In this document: piece after piece, positions 17,454 through 63,643 of the stretch
How positions within the stretch are numbered: the first letter of the stretch is position 1
Layout of the letters: each line of letters starts with the position of its first letter
From: Iphione sp. A-MEVVRFRX5
Lineage: Eukaryota
Reading direction: 5' to 3'
NCBI GenBank assembly: GCA_976226885.1
Contig: OZ320313.1
Span: 93,000,001-93,064,000 of the forward strand
Length of the DNA stretch: 64,000 nucleotides
The notes under the pieces: model-generated
Told to the model about the DNA's origin: nothing
What the model saw: the letters and a program-made list of their open reading frames with translations, nothing else
The model's database searches: none
Position numbers and translations under genes: made by a program

Positions 17454-18470
17454 ATGAAGCCCGACCAGGAACGAGTCAACAACCTTTTACGTGACACGGT
17501 GACGCTGTTGTGTAAGAATGGCCTCACGTACACAGACGAGCTGCGAGTCGAGGCTCTCATAGGAGTCACTGTCGACAGTAGCGACGTATTCCTCGTGCAT
17601 ATCAATGAACGGTTCGGCCCGGGTAGTGAGACCCGTCCCCAGGTAACGGTTGCCGCCGTCGCCTCCTCAGAAACTACAGGTCAGGATTCCTCCGGTCGTA
17701 GTGAGGTGGCACCCAACAATGCGACAACCAGTAGAGACAATACACCGGCACCTGCCCCGCGGACAGGCTCTGGCAGTGATAATGGCGCGACCCCCAGTAC
17801 AGGTTGGGCCCGGTCGGCTGCCAGTGCGGGAGGTAGTGCAGGCGCTCAGGTGGATCTCAGCAAGGTCAAATTAGAGACAGTTGACAGCAAGGAGGCAGTT
17901 GAGGAATGTTTCATGGTGCGGCCACCACAGACTGTTGCGAGGCGAGCAGATGTGGTGGCCGGTCAGCGACGGGTGCTTAGTAGTAGTGGGTCGCGGAGTT
18001 CGCCGCACCCACGGACTCCAGCTCAGGGGGATGACGCGCAGGCCATGCGTCAGCAGTATGCCCAAAGCGCGAGTGACAGTTCGTTCACAGACTACGACCC
18101 TGACTCAGGAGAACCACCACTGAAGATTAAACGGCTAGAAGACGATGACGACGGGGACGTCAGTCCAAGCAATGCCCAGTCAGCCAGTGCCAGCAGAGAC
18201 GAGGAGGATGTAAGCTACTACAGTGGAACAGGAGGTGGCGGAGGAGGAGGGGGTCGTGGATCTGCGGGGGGCAGTGCGGGAGGGGCAGGAGCCGGCTCGC
18301 AGTGGCCAAACCTGGCTGATATTGCAGCCCACCAGATGTCCTTCCAGGAGTCGAGTGGAGATGGTGGTTCGGGAACAGACGCCAACTCGATGCCTGGCTG
18401 TTCCACCTGGCCCGTCCAAAGCGGTAACCAGCGTGGCATGGCAACCGTGGGTCACCAAGGAGGCAATCTG
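17454..18470 (+). CDS. Common coding exon of an alternatively spliced zinc-finger transcription factor (339 codons, phase-0 donor CTG|GTAAGC)
   Basis: In-frame stop at 17409, then ATG at 17454. Ordered N-terminal ~55 aa (LLRDTVTLLCKNGL...ELRVEALIGVTVDSSDVFLVHINERF), then a disordered S/G linker with VKLE (SUMO-type) and PPLKIKRL (NLS-like). GT at 18471; 1017 nt is a multiple of 3. Confidence 0.85.
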
Positions 18471-18898
18471 GTAAGCTCCCTCTCTTATCACCTTCACCAC
18501 TCTATCAAGCATTGTCCAAGGAAGTCCGGTACTTGTCTTTTGTAACTAATACGTAGGAAGATTTGGAAGTTTTGTCACGAAAGTTATTTACTCTTCTATC
18601 CGTGGTTACCTACAGATTCAAAAAATCCCGCTGACCTGTTATTTGGAAGCCCAGAATAAGATATTTGTAGTGGGTATTGGAGCAAATGTCCAGACGAAGT
18701 AAAATTTGCCAGAAAATACTAAATGTAATGTAAAATGTAAAATAAAATGCTGGTTCGGATTTAGTAGCCGCACATTTGCTGCAGTGCCACACTTGACGAC
18801 CCTGCTTTCCATTGTGACAGCACATTTTAACATTTTTGAGGGATATTCTCACTGAAAGTTTTTGAAAAACTACATTTACATTTTAAGCTAAAAAGATG

Positions 18899-19256
18899 CC
18901 CCGTGCAACACGGTTCTGCGAACCAGAACAGGCTCTTACCTTGGATACCTGGAAATTTCTTTAAATTCTACATTTTGATGTTTTAGTCGCATGCAACTCG
19001 AGTTTTGTCACAAGATTTGAAGATCATAATTCCCTTTTTCAGTTTTTAGTTCATAATTCCCTTTTTCAGTTTTTGAATGAGATTGTTGAATATTCATCGT
19101 GTTTAAATTCGCTGAGGAGCCAGAGAACATGCGTCAGGCATACTTAAGGTCATTTTTAAACCACAGATTTATATGTGAAATCAAGACTCGATTTTTGAAT
19201 TAAAATTGTTAAGCGAGTCATATGAGGGTAAATGTAGAGCCATGTTGCATAACGGG
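18899..19256. mobile_element. Non-autonomous DNA element (MITE) with imperfect TIRs
   Basis: Left end cccgtgcaacacggttct; reverse complement of the right end is cccgttatgcaacatggctct. Confidence 0.55.
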
Positions 19257-20423
19257 ATGGATGCCCTTGGATACTGTTTTGTAGTTAACCTTTCTTGTGA
19301 GAAGACAAAATTAAATCGATTATTTCTTTGTTAGCTCCTGACATATATATGCGGAATTCCTGCTGACATGTCTTTTGTACGAATGCACGTAATTTGTTCA
19401 CGATTATGTTGAATTTCGACTTATAAATAAGTAAATTGTAAATGAATGACAGTCATTGATAGTGCTTGACCAATGTCAGAAAGTCGATTCTCGTCATTTA
19501 ATGATGTTATATATCAATGTAAGTTATCCAAGTATATATATGTCTTTGTTATGAAATATTTTTTGACACAGTGATATGTATGTTGCCTGGATGGAGGTGG
19601 AATGAAACATCATACTGTATTACAATGAAACTTGGGAAGAGACAATGTCGGGGAAAAATCAAAGCAACATTTTTTGGAACGAGGTGCTCGGGTGTTTTTA
19701 TGCCACTAAATTGTGTCTGTTTTGTTATTATATCAATCTTATGTTGTGGATTTTTTTTCAACAAAACAGAAAGTTAGCAGACATTTGATAGTGATTTTCC
19801 CCTATTTGTCTTCAGGACATATAACCAAACGGATAGCTCCTGGGTGCTGAGGGATTGGATTGCTCTATTAGTAATAACTCCTCTCACAAACATGCCTGGT
19901 GATCTTGTAGCTCCCTGAACTCCTTCCTGACCACCTAAAATGGAGTAATTTGAAGAGGTAAATGCTGCTGAACATAGCTTAGGTCTACTTTACTGTCTCT
20001 CTGGTGGAGGCAGCAGGTGATATTACCACTCCTTCCATGCCGTGGCGCTGTCAGATCTGCTGTCTGCACGACTTCTTTATTTGCTCAGCAGTCCGGGTAC
20101 AGCAAATATTTTGATTCTTAGTAAATTGATATGATTTTCATGCTCGTTTTTGCTGTGTCGGTTATGTTATTAATGGAGGTCACATCTGCTGTAGTTCTGT
20201 CAGTGGTAGCGGATGATGTGACCTCCAATAAGGCTGTGTTCATATGCATCCGTTTTTTTCTGAAAAGGGAGACGGATCAGTAGCACTTGTACTACTCTGT
20301 ACACATGTATCCGTTTCAAAACGGATCCGGCTCCATGCCCGTTTTCAATAGGAAACAATGTTGAAGATACATCTGGTGAGCACATGCAAGGAATAAATAC
20401 GGATACCCTGGGGGGGGGGGTAA

Positions 20424-62039: not shown

Positions 62040-63060
62040 TTCCTTTTGTCTCAGACTGTCCTTCCAATCGTATTGATCCCTCCTGAGCTTCCCAAGTGGT
62101 CCTTCCCCCTTGCTCTTTCCTATTGTCTCTCAGGCTGTCCCTCCCCGTCATGTTAATCCCTCTTATTGTCCCATACATTGTTTCTTCCCACAATATTGCT
62201 CTCTCCTTTCATCCCCTATGTTGTCCTTTTCACCATCATGTTGCTCTTTCCTATGATCATCCATGTATAGGATCCCCTTTGTTGTCCTTTCCCCATCATA
62301 TTGCCCTTTCCTATGATTCCCTGTGTTGTTTCCCTACCCACCCACCCCCATCATGTTGCTCTTCCCTATCAACCCCCATGTTGTCCCTCCCCCATCATGT
62401 TGCTCTCTCCTATCATCCCTGTGTTGTCCTCACCCCATCATGTTGCTTTCTCCTACCATCCCCCATATTGTCATTAGCCCATCATATTGCTTTCCCCTGT
62501 CATCCCCTATGTTGTCCTTACCCCTCATGTTGATCCCTCCCGATGCCCCAGCAGGTTGAACCTTTCTGTCATGTTGCTCCCTTCTGCTATCCCCCAGGTT
62601 GTCCTTCTTTGTTAATATGAGGCTAGATCGTCCTTTTTCAATCATGTTACTCCACCCCAGTGCCCACACTGGTTTTCTGTGTGTCCTTGTTGCACTCCTG
62701 CATCCTCCTTATGGAACACATGGCCATACCCCAAATTGACATTGAATAGAAGATGTTGCAAGGTCGGGGGAGCATGTTGTGTCAAGGTTAGGAATTGTAT
62801 GTGGTGTAGATGATTACCAGGTCAGGGAGAGTATATGCTGTCAAGGTTGGGTAGTATGTGATATAAGAGATTGTAGCAAGGTTGGGGCGATTCATGATGT
62901 CAAGTCAGGTAGAGTATGTGGTATGGAAAATGGTAGCAAGGTCAGGGAGAGTATGTAGTGTAGGAGATGGTAGCAATGCCATGGAGACTATATATTGTCA
63001 ATGTCAGGGAGAGTATGTGGGGTAGCAGATGGGAATCTAATAGACTGGCTAAACTCAGCA
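62040..63060. repeat. Two adjacent degenerate tandem arrays (ccccatcatgttgctctctcctatcat-type, then ggtagcaaggtcagggagagtatgtg-type)
   Basis: Recurring motifs at ~62150-62600 and ~62750-63030. Confidence 0.75.
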
Positions 63061-63325
63061 GAGCCACGGTCACGAGGATCACAAAATAAAACAAATCTCG
63101 TTCAGTATGTGTATGTGGGTGTGTATTTGTTTCTTCCTTAGTTAGCCATAAAAGGCAGAACCATTTGCATTGTATAAAGTATAAAGTAGGTCTTTGCTTT
63201 CTCACTGCAATGCAGTAGTCCGAACATCAACCTCCATTTTAAGCTTTATGCTGGGTATTGTCAACGCCTCCTTACTTGCCTAGATATCTTAGAGACAACT
63301 TATTTTCTTTTTTTTTCGTTTGTAG

Positions 63326-63643
63326 CAGTATAGCGGTGGATCCAGTGCCATGTCCGTTATTGGGCAGGGATTGATTATGGGGAGAGCTACAAGAACTCCA
63401 TATCGACCCCGCCAATCCGAAGCCAAGGAGTTTGTATGTACGACGCCCGGCTGTGGCCGGAGCTACTATTACAAACATCACCTGCAACGACATATTTCTG
63501 TGAGCGGCCATACATCTTTGTGGCCCAGCGGAGCAAACCTGGTAATGAATTCTGCAGTCAGCCCAGAGCAACATGACCCAGTAAGCAAGAATAGATCACC
63601 AGCATATGTTCATGTTGTCAAACCTGAACCCAATATCAGATGA
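63326..63643 (+). CDS. Alternative terminal exon F, single C2H2 zinc finger
   Basis: Acceptor ttttctttttttttcgtttgtAG|CAG (NAGNAG; both options phase 0). QYSGG...AKEFVCTTPGCGRSYYYKHHLQRHISVSGH. Confidence 0.85.
   Translation, partial: QYSGGSSAMSVIGQGLIMGRATRTPYRPRQSEAKEFVCTTPGCGRSYYYKHHLQRHISVSGHTSLWPSGANLVMNSAVSPEQHDPVSKNRSPAYVHVVKPEPNIR

Follow-up and report, generated by a model that had tools for sequence, protein, structure and literature searches.

A conserved lola-like locus without a BTB domain: one constant coding exon followed by an array of single-zinc-finger exons

Introduction

Many alternative DNA-binding modules on one constant interaction domain are a textbook oddity of insects. 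The lola gene gives rise to 20 isoforms, 17 of which have distinct C-terminal fingers (PMC11426971), and mod(mdg4) to 30 or more, all produced from alternative 3′ exons (PMC11426971, PMC13490949). The TTK-type BTB domain is reported to be arthropod-specific and missing from Annelida and Mollusca (PMC11426971). Here we describe a stretch of 64,000 nucleotides from Iphione sp. A-MEVVRFRX5 (NCBI GenBank assembly GCA_976226885.1, contig OZ320313.1, positions 93,000,001 to 93,064,000 of the forward strand; below, the window), in which one coding exon with a new N-terminal domain is followed by six exons that each encode a single C2H2 zinc finger.

The array, which a preliminary description had proposed from the letters of the window, is a real and conserved feature, the reading given there is supported, and the locus is lola-like without containing a BTB domain. 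We read it as a single gene with alternative last exons, and put the probability of this at roughly 0.77. In the full-text literature searched, no description of a lola-like locus outside arthropods was found.

Organisation of the locus

The window would hold one transcription-factor gene, whose first coding exon encodes a small, previously undescribed N-terminal domain and a disordered linker. Its primary transcript would be spliced in cis from the donor at 18470 to a single last exon, taken from a mutually exclusive set of at least six (probably nine or more, by comparison with a relative). What each last exon would add is a basic stretch, a single C-x4-C finger with a recognition helix specific to it, then a tail and a stop codon, and presumably a separate 3′ end. 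All products would have the same constant module, combined with different DNA-reading modules. The exons concerned are the following, with a slash marking an exon boundary here and below.

17454-18470, + strand: constant first coding exon, 339 amino acids; ATG at 17454, phase-0 donor CTG/GTAAGC
33223-33699, + strand: candidate last exon A, 158 amino acids; CAG acceptor, finger CLVSGCERRFYHSQDARRHERQVH at 33337-33408
34133-34768, + strand: candidate last exon B, 211 amino acids; CAG acceptor, finger CLFRGCGKRYHNCRDALTHEKTAH at 34271-34342
52147-52782, + strand: candidate last exon C, 211 amino acids; TAG acceptor, finger CTVPGCQKRFFHSSHLSRHRSQEH at 52249-52320
53007-53243, + strand: candidate last exon D, 78 amino acids; TAG acceptor, finger CTYPGCGKTFYHRPNLYRHRKDH(GH) at 53160-53234
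57879-58205, + strand: candidate last exon E, 108 amino acids; TAG acceptor, finger CHHPGCGKAFCHSSGLSRHRREH at 58014-58082
63326-63643, + strand: candidate last exon F, 105 amino acids; TAG acceptor, finger CTTPGCGRSYYYKHHLQRHISVSGH at 63437-63511

The open reading frame (ORF) that begins at 17454 continues past the GT at 18471; the proposed exon end is ggcaatctg/GTAAGC, in phase 0, in agreement with the preliminary description. The six polypyrimidine-AG acceptors listed there are likewise found at their coordinates and in phase 0. On a crude polypyrimidine-tract score, computed over the 4482 AGs of the window, they rank in the top 0.04-2.7%. Exons C, D, E and F open exactly past the TAG that closes a long pyrimidine run, and A and B, whose acceptors are CAG, have a match to the branch-point sequence CTAAC some 33 nt upstream (at -33 for A). 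In the latter two exons the frame is open further upstream, and the phase-0 acceptor is the best-scoring candidate.

Each of the six exons encodes one C-x4-C-x12-H-x3-5-H finger behind a basic stretch and ends at a stop of its own, as translation and a regular-expression scan confirm. All six match the classical C2H2 spacing C-x2-5-C-x12-H-x3-5-H. The aromatic position of the C2H2 core is F or Y in every case, the core leucine position is L or A, and the basic stretch ahead of each finger ends in (D/E)KP(Y/F)xC. A six-frame scan of the 64 kb finds these six fingers only on the + strand, and one chance match on the - strand; the search of both strands for further finger exons, advised in the preliminary description, adds none within the window.

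Conservation of the array in relatives

The closest relative for which DNA is available (P0001, ENA ERZ25767047, loci L001 and L005; here S2) carries the locus on one 2.2-Mb gap-free contig. Its donor, ATG/GTAAGA, is followed over the next 17 kb by at least nine same-strand finger ORFs, spaced 1-2 kb apart, and all of them open directly past a pyrimidine-rich TAG. A more distant relative (P0006, L007; here S3), also on a gap-free contig, has at least five comparable finger exons, 4-10 kb downstream. Both relatives have diverged deeply from the window. Conservation of the array in related genomes, proposed as a check on the original claim, is thereby borne out. Across the three species the acceptors are in phase 0 in 20 of 20 exons. 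The odds of 1 in 729 first quoted for the six phases of the window ignored the reader's choice of acceptors; the 14 further phase-0 exons of the other two species nevertheless take the agreement far beyond chance.

For exons A, C, D, E and F, the best matches in S2 come in the same order. The orthologues lie in L001 at 14128 for A, 15755 for C (74% identity over 43 amino acids), 16643 for D and 18788 for E, where LG stands right at the acceptor in both species. Exon F matches the sixth and seventh S2 exons, and about two to four further S2 exons follow, depending on which of the two is its counterpart, the later finger exons being of the CAFLGCDASFFQKRNLRRHERMKH and CQMPGCGKHFSFETSARRHERTAH types. 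From this comparison the array of the window likely continues past 64000, as had been anticipated. Exon B has no clear S2 orthologue and, to judge from its sequence, is probably a lineage-specific local copy of A.

The fingers were compared at recognition-helix positions -1, +2, +3 and +6.

Exon A: H-Q-D-R, identical in the window and S2
Exon C: H-S-H-R, identical in the window and S2
Exon D: H-P-N-R, identical in the window and S2
Exon E: H-S-G-R, identical in the window and S2

The helix of exon F differs from its S2 counterpart at one or more of the four positions, and the residues differ among neighbouring (paralogous) exons. Over 36 codons around each finger, non-synonymous divergence (dN) is 0.11-0.12 for the cores of A, C and D, with synonymous divergence (dS) saturated; the exon anatomy is thus kept under purifying selection. 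Coding conservation extends from the acceptor to the stop, and islands of the tails are kept near the stop (HTRGVSP and TFT in A, LPEVQQLF in C). Helix identity between orthologues, together with conserved tails, is the pattern expected of separately maintained DNA-reading modules, each translated to its own stop.

When stop-to-stop ORFs of S2 are compared with the window, the constant exon and the finger exons are recovered, along with short, overlapping ORFs on the opposite strand at three of these places. Elsewhere between the exons, intron 1 included, no coding block is conserved, and no non-finger alternative exon is common to the two loci. Because the comparison recovers constant and finger exons only, neither hidden middle exons nor private 5′ exons are conserved in both loci. 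The finger exons are conserved with their acceptors, mostly have no start of their own and each have a stop, and upstream of them no conserved coding exon other than the constant one has a donor that matches; for these reasons, several of the finger exons would appear to be in alternative use in the window species.

The preliminary description held that the finger exons mostly have no convincing independent start. This stands for three of them at least: in A and C no ATG lies in frame ahead of the finger, and in B there is a single one, at the residue before the first cysteine. In D, E and F, in-frame methionine codons precede the finger. Such methionines would suit an arrangement of separate small genes, in which each finger exon has its own unrecognised 5′ exon and promoter and the common phase was inherited through tandem duplication. 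The lack of junction reads for the window species would suit it too, and whole-gene duplication does occur in the family, given that the N-domain exon is highly multiplied in some annelid assemblies. The comparison with S2 argues the other way: like A and C, seven of its nine finger ORFs have no methionine before the finger, coding conservation begins exactly at the acceptor, and neither species has a further conserved block that might serve as a private 5′ exon. Moreover, the N-domain exon, and with it the constant exon, occurs just once in the 64 kb of the window, and the spliced products of relatives run straight from the N-domain exon to a finger exon. We consider separate genes very unlikely.

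Splicing of the constant exon to a finger exon in relatives

A first exon that ends at a phase-0 GT donor is present in the window; its splicing to a finger-bearing last exon is seen in relatives only. On short Logan contigs of 1.5-1.7 kb, three of these (P0134, P0100 and P0173) combine the N-domain with a linker and a single finger at the C-terminus. For P0134 and P0100 the ORF is confirmed to be complete and to have untranslated sequence on both sides, and the finger of P0134 is of the exon-A type (DxRRHERQxH). In addition, two clusters at 90% identity each pair an unspliced with a spliced form. In the first, P0062 reads through (...LQRK/VGTFH) and P0287 is spliced (...LQRK/RKPGK...CKMCGSSFNHRPSLLAHQINKH), with one finger; in the second, P0282 reads through (...VESD/VSLPV) and P0176 is spliced (...VESD/SVGALY...CQVGGCYRMFFRGSELYRHQREKH), again with one finger. 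The point of divergence is a phase-0 GT donor, because a valine codon (GTN) follows there in the unspliced form. On sequence grounds, these pairs fix the two-exon coding structure for the family.

The shared phase at the 5′ side of all the finger exons would also permit serial splicing into one multi-finger protein, with one finger contributed by each exon. Exon B has a possible weak phase-0 donor right after its finger (aag/GTGAGA at 34346, within 34343-34351, one codon past the finger), which, if used, could link B to a downstream finger exon in a two-finger product, and some family members carry two to four fingers (P0123, P0169, L008). Against this, A, C, D, E and F have no usable phase-0 donor past the finger, the post-finger tails are conserved down to the stop, and those single-finger spliced products in which a tail is visible (P0134, P0100, P0176, P0287) end in tail and stop. 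Serial splicing is in our view extremely unlikely.

Several points weigh against a single gene with alternative last exons. No product 100% identical to that of the window, and hence no transcript of the window species, was found in the collections searched. A full-length search with P0134 did not return any species with two finger exons on the same constant exon; this absence of sibling isoforms is weak, because short-read Logan contigs probably break at isoform branch points. Five of the six exons score only 10.7-21.5 bits against Pfam zf-C2H2, below the gathering threshold of 25.2, and exon B has no zf-C2H2 score at all; single fingers often score under the whole-protein Pfam cut-off. A clear canonical poly(A) signal follows exon A only (AATAAA, 17 nt past the stop), and the interval from the C stop to the D acceptor has none. 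Finally, contiguity over the assembly gap at 26444-26603 is not readable directly from the scaffold; the join is supported by the same exon order (constant, A, C, D, E, F) on the gap-free contig of the relative.

The scarcity of poly(A) signals between neighbouring exons would also be compatible with trans-splicing as at mod(mdg4) and, in part, at lola. In that case, each finger exon would have a promoter and a pre-mRNA of its own, and trans-splicing would attach it to the constant exon. This mode is known from the closest analogues (PMC11426971, PMC13490949), and the introns that separate the constant exon from the finger exons are long (15-45 kb) and filled with repeats. Nothing in the locus demands it, however: in all three species every finger exon is on the same strand as the constant exon and downstream of it, and the exons of the compact relative are merely 1-2 kb apart. 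No shared intronic motif was found, and a comparison of the start of intron 1 with the regions 5′ of the acceptors, for docking/selector pairing of the Dscam kind, gave purine-rich/pyrimidine-rich low-complexity matches only. Trans-splicing is unlikely. With cis-splicing to alternative last exons, the choice of exon would be coupled to the choice of 3′ end.

The constant exon

Within the constant exon, four segments stand out.

17454-17621, + strand: conserved N-terminal domain, about 56 amino acids, delimited by alignments; predicted helix 3-23 and beta hairpin 30-40/44-54
17922-17978, + strand: conserved linker motif PPQTVARRADVVAGQRRVL, present too in P0001, P0002, P0003, P0004 and P0005
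18108-18134, + strand: basic patch GEPPLKIKR; EPPxKxKR recurs in P0001-P0006
18393-18413, + strand: PGCSTWP motif just 5′ of the donor; PGC[SATD]xW occurs near the exon end in many family members

The constant part was said from the outset to have no BTB domain, and this is upheld: a Pfam scan of the 339 amino acids returns no family at E ≤ 1, hence no BTB/POZ, and seven relatives of the exon have neither a BTB nor any other Pfam domain. The linker that surrounds PPQTVARRADVVAGQRRVL is of low complexity. The GEPPLKIKR patch looks like a nuclear localisation signal; together with a VAGQRRVL motif, it is retained within an otherwise fast-evolving linker. PGCSxW is also present near the exon end in most of the closer relatives, and the sequences that have it are ORF calls on genomic contigs which run through a valine codon (GTN) shortly past the motif, at the donor. 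Since these calls read through GTN at the donor site, the phase-0 donor is conserved. More widely, many members of different subfamilies have PGC(S/T)xW 15-25 residues ahead of the donor.

The N-terminal domain and its family

A word-indexed protein search with the constant exon recovers 12 relatives (P0001-P0012), which share an N-terminal block of about 55 amino acids, MKPDQERVxNLLxDTVTLLCKNGL...DVFLVHINExF. The domain of the window is 92% identical to its nearest member and keeps all invariant residues (T15, L19, C20, L24, G37, D41 and F46). A profile of the domain, searched against 1.84 billion cluster representatives (clusters at 50% identity), matches 1779 of them at E ≤ 1e-3 and 1205 at E ≤ 1e-10. 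Most of the listed matches resemble first exons read through a donor. Gene models with the domain are present in public databases as uncharacterised proteins, and no paper describing it was found in the full-text literature searched.

Those relatives from the sequence search that carry a species name come from two annelids, Lamellibrachia satsuma and Ridgeia piscesae, in keeping with the earlier placement of the locus in a non-insect animal. Among the AlphaFold DB clusters, the only real matches are R7UWG5, R7UDH6, R7VAM6, T1FRP8, T1FQY5, T1FSU5 and A0A7I8W7T4, which, from their accession series, we take to belong to Capitella, Helobdella and Dimorphilus, all annelids. The domain is N-terminal in all seven, and five are named 'C2H2-type domain-containing protein'. 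The ESM Atlas adds annelid and mollusc clusters, the mollusc leads being weaker.

AlphaFold2, run with an alignment of 65 sequences, predicts a helix (3-23) followed by a hairpin (30-40 and 44-54), at a mean predicted local distance difference test score (pLDDT) of 87. No match was found by a PDB sequence search with the domain profile, by Foldseek against the PDB (best E-value about 1) or by a wide structural search with VIA-align (best Z 3.8). The MADS-box fold, which has the same helix-plus-hairpin topology, was considered and rejected, with Z 3.2-3.6 at a root-mean-square deviation of 6-10 Å.

The domain is net acidic, its conserved positions are mostly hydrophobic, and it always occupies the extreme N-terminus. 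Unrelated members (P0013, P0014, P0015, P0016, P0073 and P0094) have it doubled in tandem, with very different linker lengths, a pattern in the sequences that suggests repeated independent duplication of a self-associating unit. A role in protein interaction or self-association fits its acidity, hydrophobic conserved core, extreme N-terminal place and independent tandem duplications; by analogy with BTB, ZAD and SCAN, it may be a self-association or partner-binding module. An AlphaFold2 model of a natural tandem pair is poor (pLDDT 54, predicted template modelling score 0.44) and speaks neither for nor against such a role.

Other branches of the family depart from the single-finger form. In one assembly (L008 10001-20301; ENA ERZ21939214, probably annelid), the first exon with the N-domain exists in many copies, with at least six family proteins on one 534-kb contig, and is followed here by two last ORFs, each with three to four ordinary C-x2-C fingers and with near-identical acceptor regions (...ccagctgacYatag). 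Because of these ORFs, the variable module can be multi-finger in other family branches. P0123, from a Logan/JGI contig of 2100 nt, represents a subfamily in which the first exon ends near VYTDIA; it has three widely spaced C-x4-C fingers and several VVDLTR and DVVIVGTG stretches that resemble SUMO-interaction motifs.

Introns, repeats and the assembly gap

The first intron contains decayed repeat ORFs and an assembly gap.

18471-33222, + strand: first intron (to exon A), with decayed repeat ORFs and the assembly gap 26444-26603

The gap is a run of N, 8 kb downstream of the donor and 6.6 kb upstream of the first acceptor, and does not interrupt any coding sequence; as it is intronic, the reading frame is unaffected. 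An additional exon inside it is conceivable. The ORF at 26252-26698 is spurious, being created by the N run that it spans. Just before the gap, a series of ORFs on the + strand (21744-25574) has no Pfam match and is probably a decayed mobile element. The intron between B and C contains, on the - strand (44994-46240), two adjoining Penelope-like retroelement ORFs, one of them with a GIY-YIG nuclease domain (Pfam E 8e-7). At 32900-33000, about 250 nt 5′ of the acceptor of exon A, there is a (TA)n-type microsatellite, which a minus-strand ORF renders as IYIYIY. An Rfam scan of the whole window returned no match.

Comparison with known systems

We would give even odds to a broader proposal, namely that Spiralia have a large undescribed family of transcription factors with a new self-association N-domain and arrays of single-finger last exons, convergent with lola and mod(mdg4). 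The exon array would be so old that synonymous sites have reached saturation, yet the specificities of individual fingers persist. If true, this would be a second, unrelated solution, showing that evolution has turned to this architecture more than once to obtain many transcription-factor specificities from a single promoter. The choice among mutually exclusive last exons could then be compared between natural systems. The work flags a widespread domain (about 1,800 clusters at 50% identity) that has neither a Pfam entry nor a solved structure. As the single-finger modules have recognition residues conserved between species, their DNA motifs are directly testable.

The single finger behind a basic stretch has a parallel in the GAGA factor (Trl), in which a single C2H2 finger follows basic residues and a long linker connects it to an N-terminal protein-interaction domain. 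By this analogy, basic stretch and finger together may read a short DNA motif. The likeness is one of analogy only: the GAGA factor has a C-x2-C finger and a BTB domain, its isoforms differ in their Q-rich tails and not in the finger, and no GAGA-family Pfam match is among those at E ≤ 1. KRAB, SCAN, ZAD and FAX are, like the present domain, small clade-restricted N-terminal modules on C2H2 fingers, with large copy-number expansions. Unlike in those families, diversity here would come from alternative last exons and not from long tandem finger arrays, and there is no match to them in sequence or fold.

At the level of gene anatomy, the locus has what characterises the lola and mod(mdg4) loci, a constant part and an array of last exons with binding modules of their own. 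As at lola, a constant 5′ coding part precedes a tandem, same-strand array of alternative 3′ exons, which mostly have their own C2H2 finger or fingers, stop and 3′ end. The constant module is different, a helix-plus-hairpin domain of about 55 amino acids in place of the BTB domain, and each variable exon here has exactly one C-x4-C finger behind a basic stretch. The constant coding part of lola spans several exons, whereas here it is one exon; the lineage is spiralian, not arthropod, and trans-splicing is not needed. With mod(mdg4) the locus shares one constant part and many alternative 3′ exons that give different DNA- or partner-binding modules. There, the constant part is a TTK-type BTB domain, the variable modules are mostly FLYWCH and not C2H2, all mRNAs are trans-spliced, and variable exons occur on both strands; here, every exon is on the same strand.

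Since the defining BTB domain is absent, the locus is not a member of the lola/mod(mdg4) TTK family. Given this absence and the reported lack of TTK-type BTB domains in Annelida and Mollusca (PMC11426971), we infer an origin independent of the arthropod BTB loci. The architecture of a constant domain plus an array of finger exons is already known; what is new is the constant domain and the clade in which it is found.

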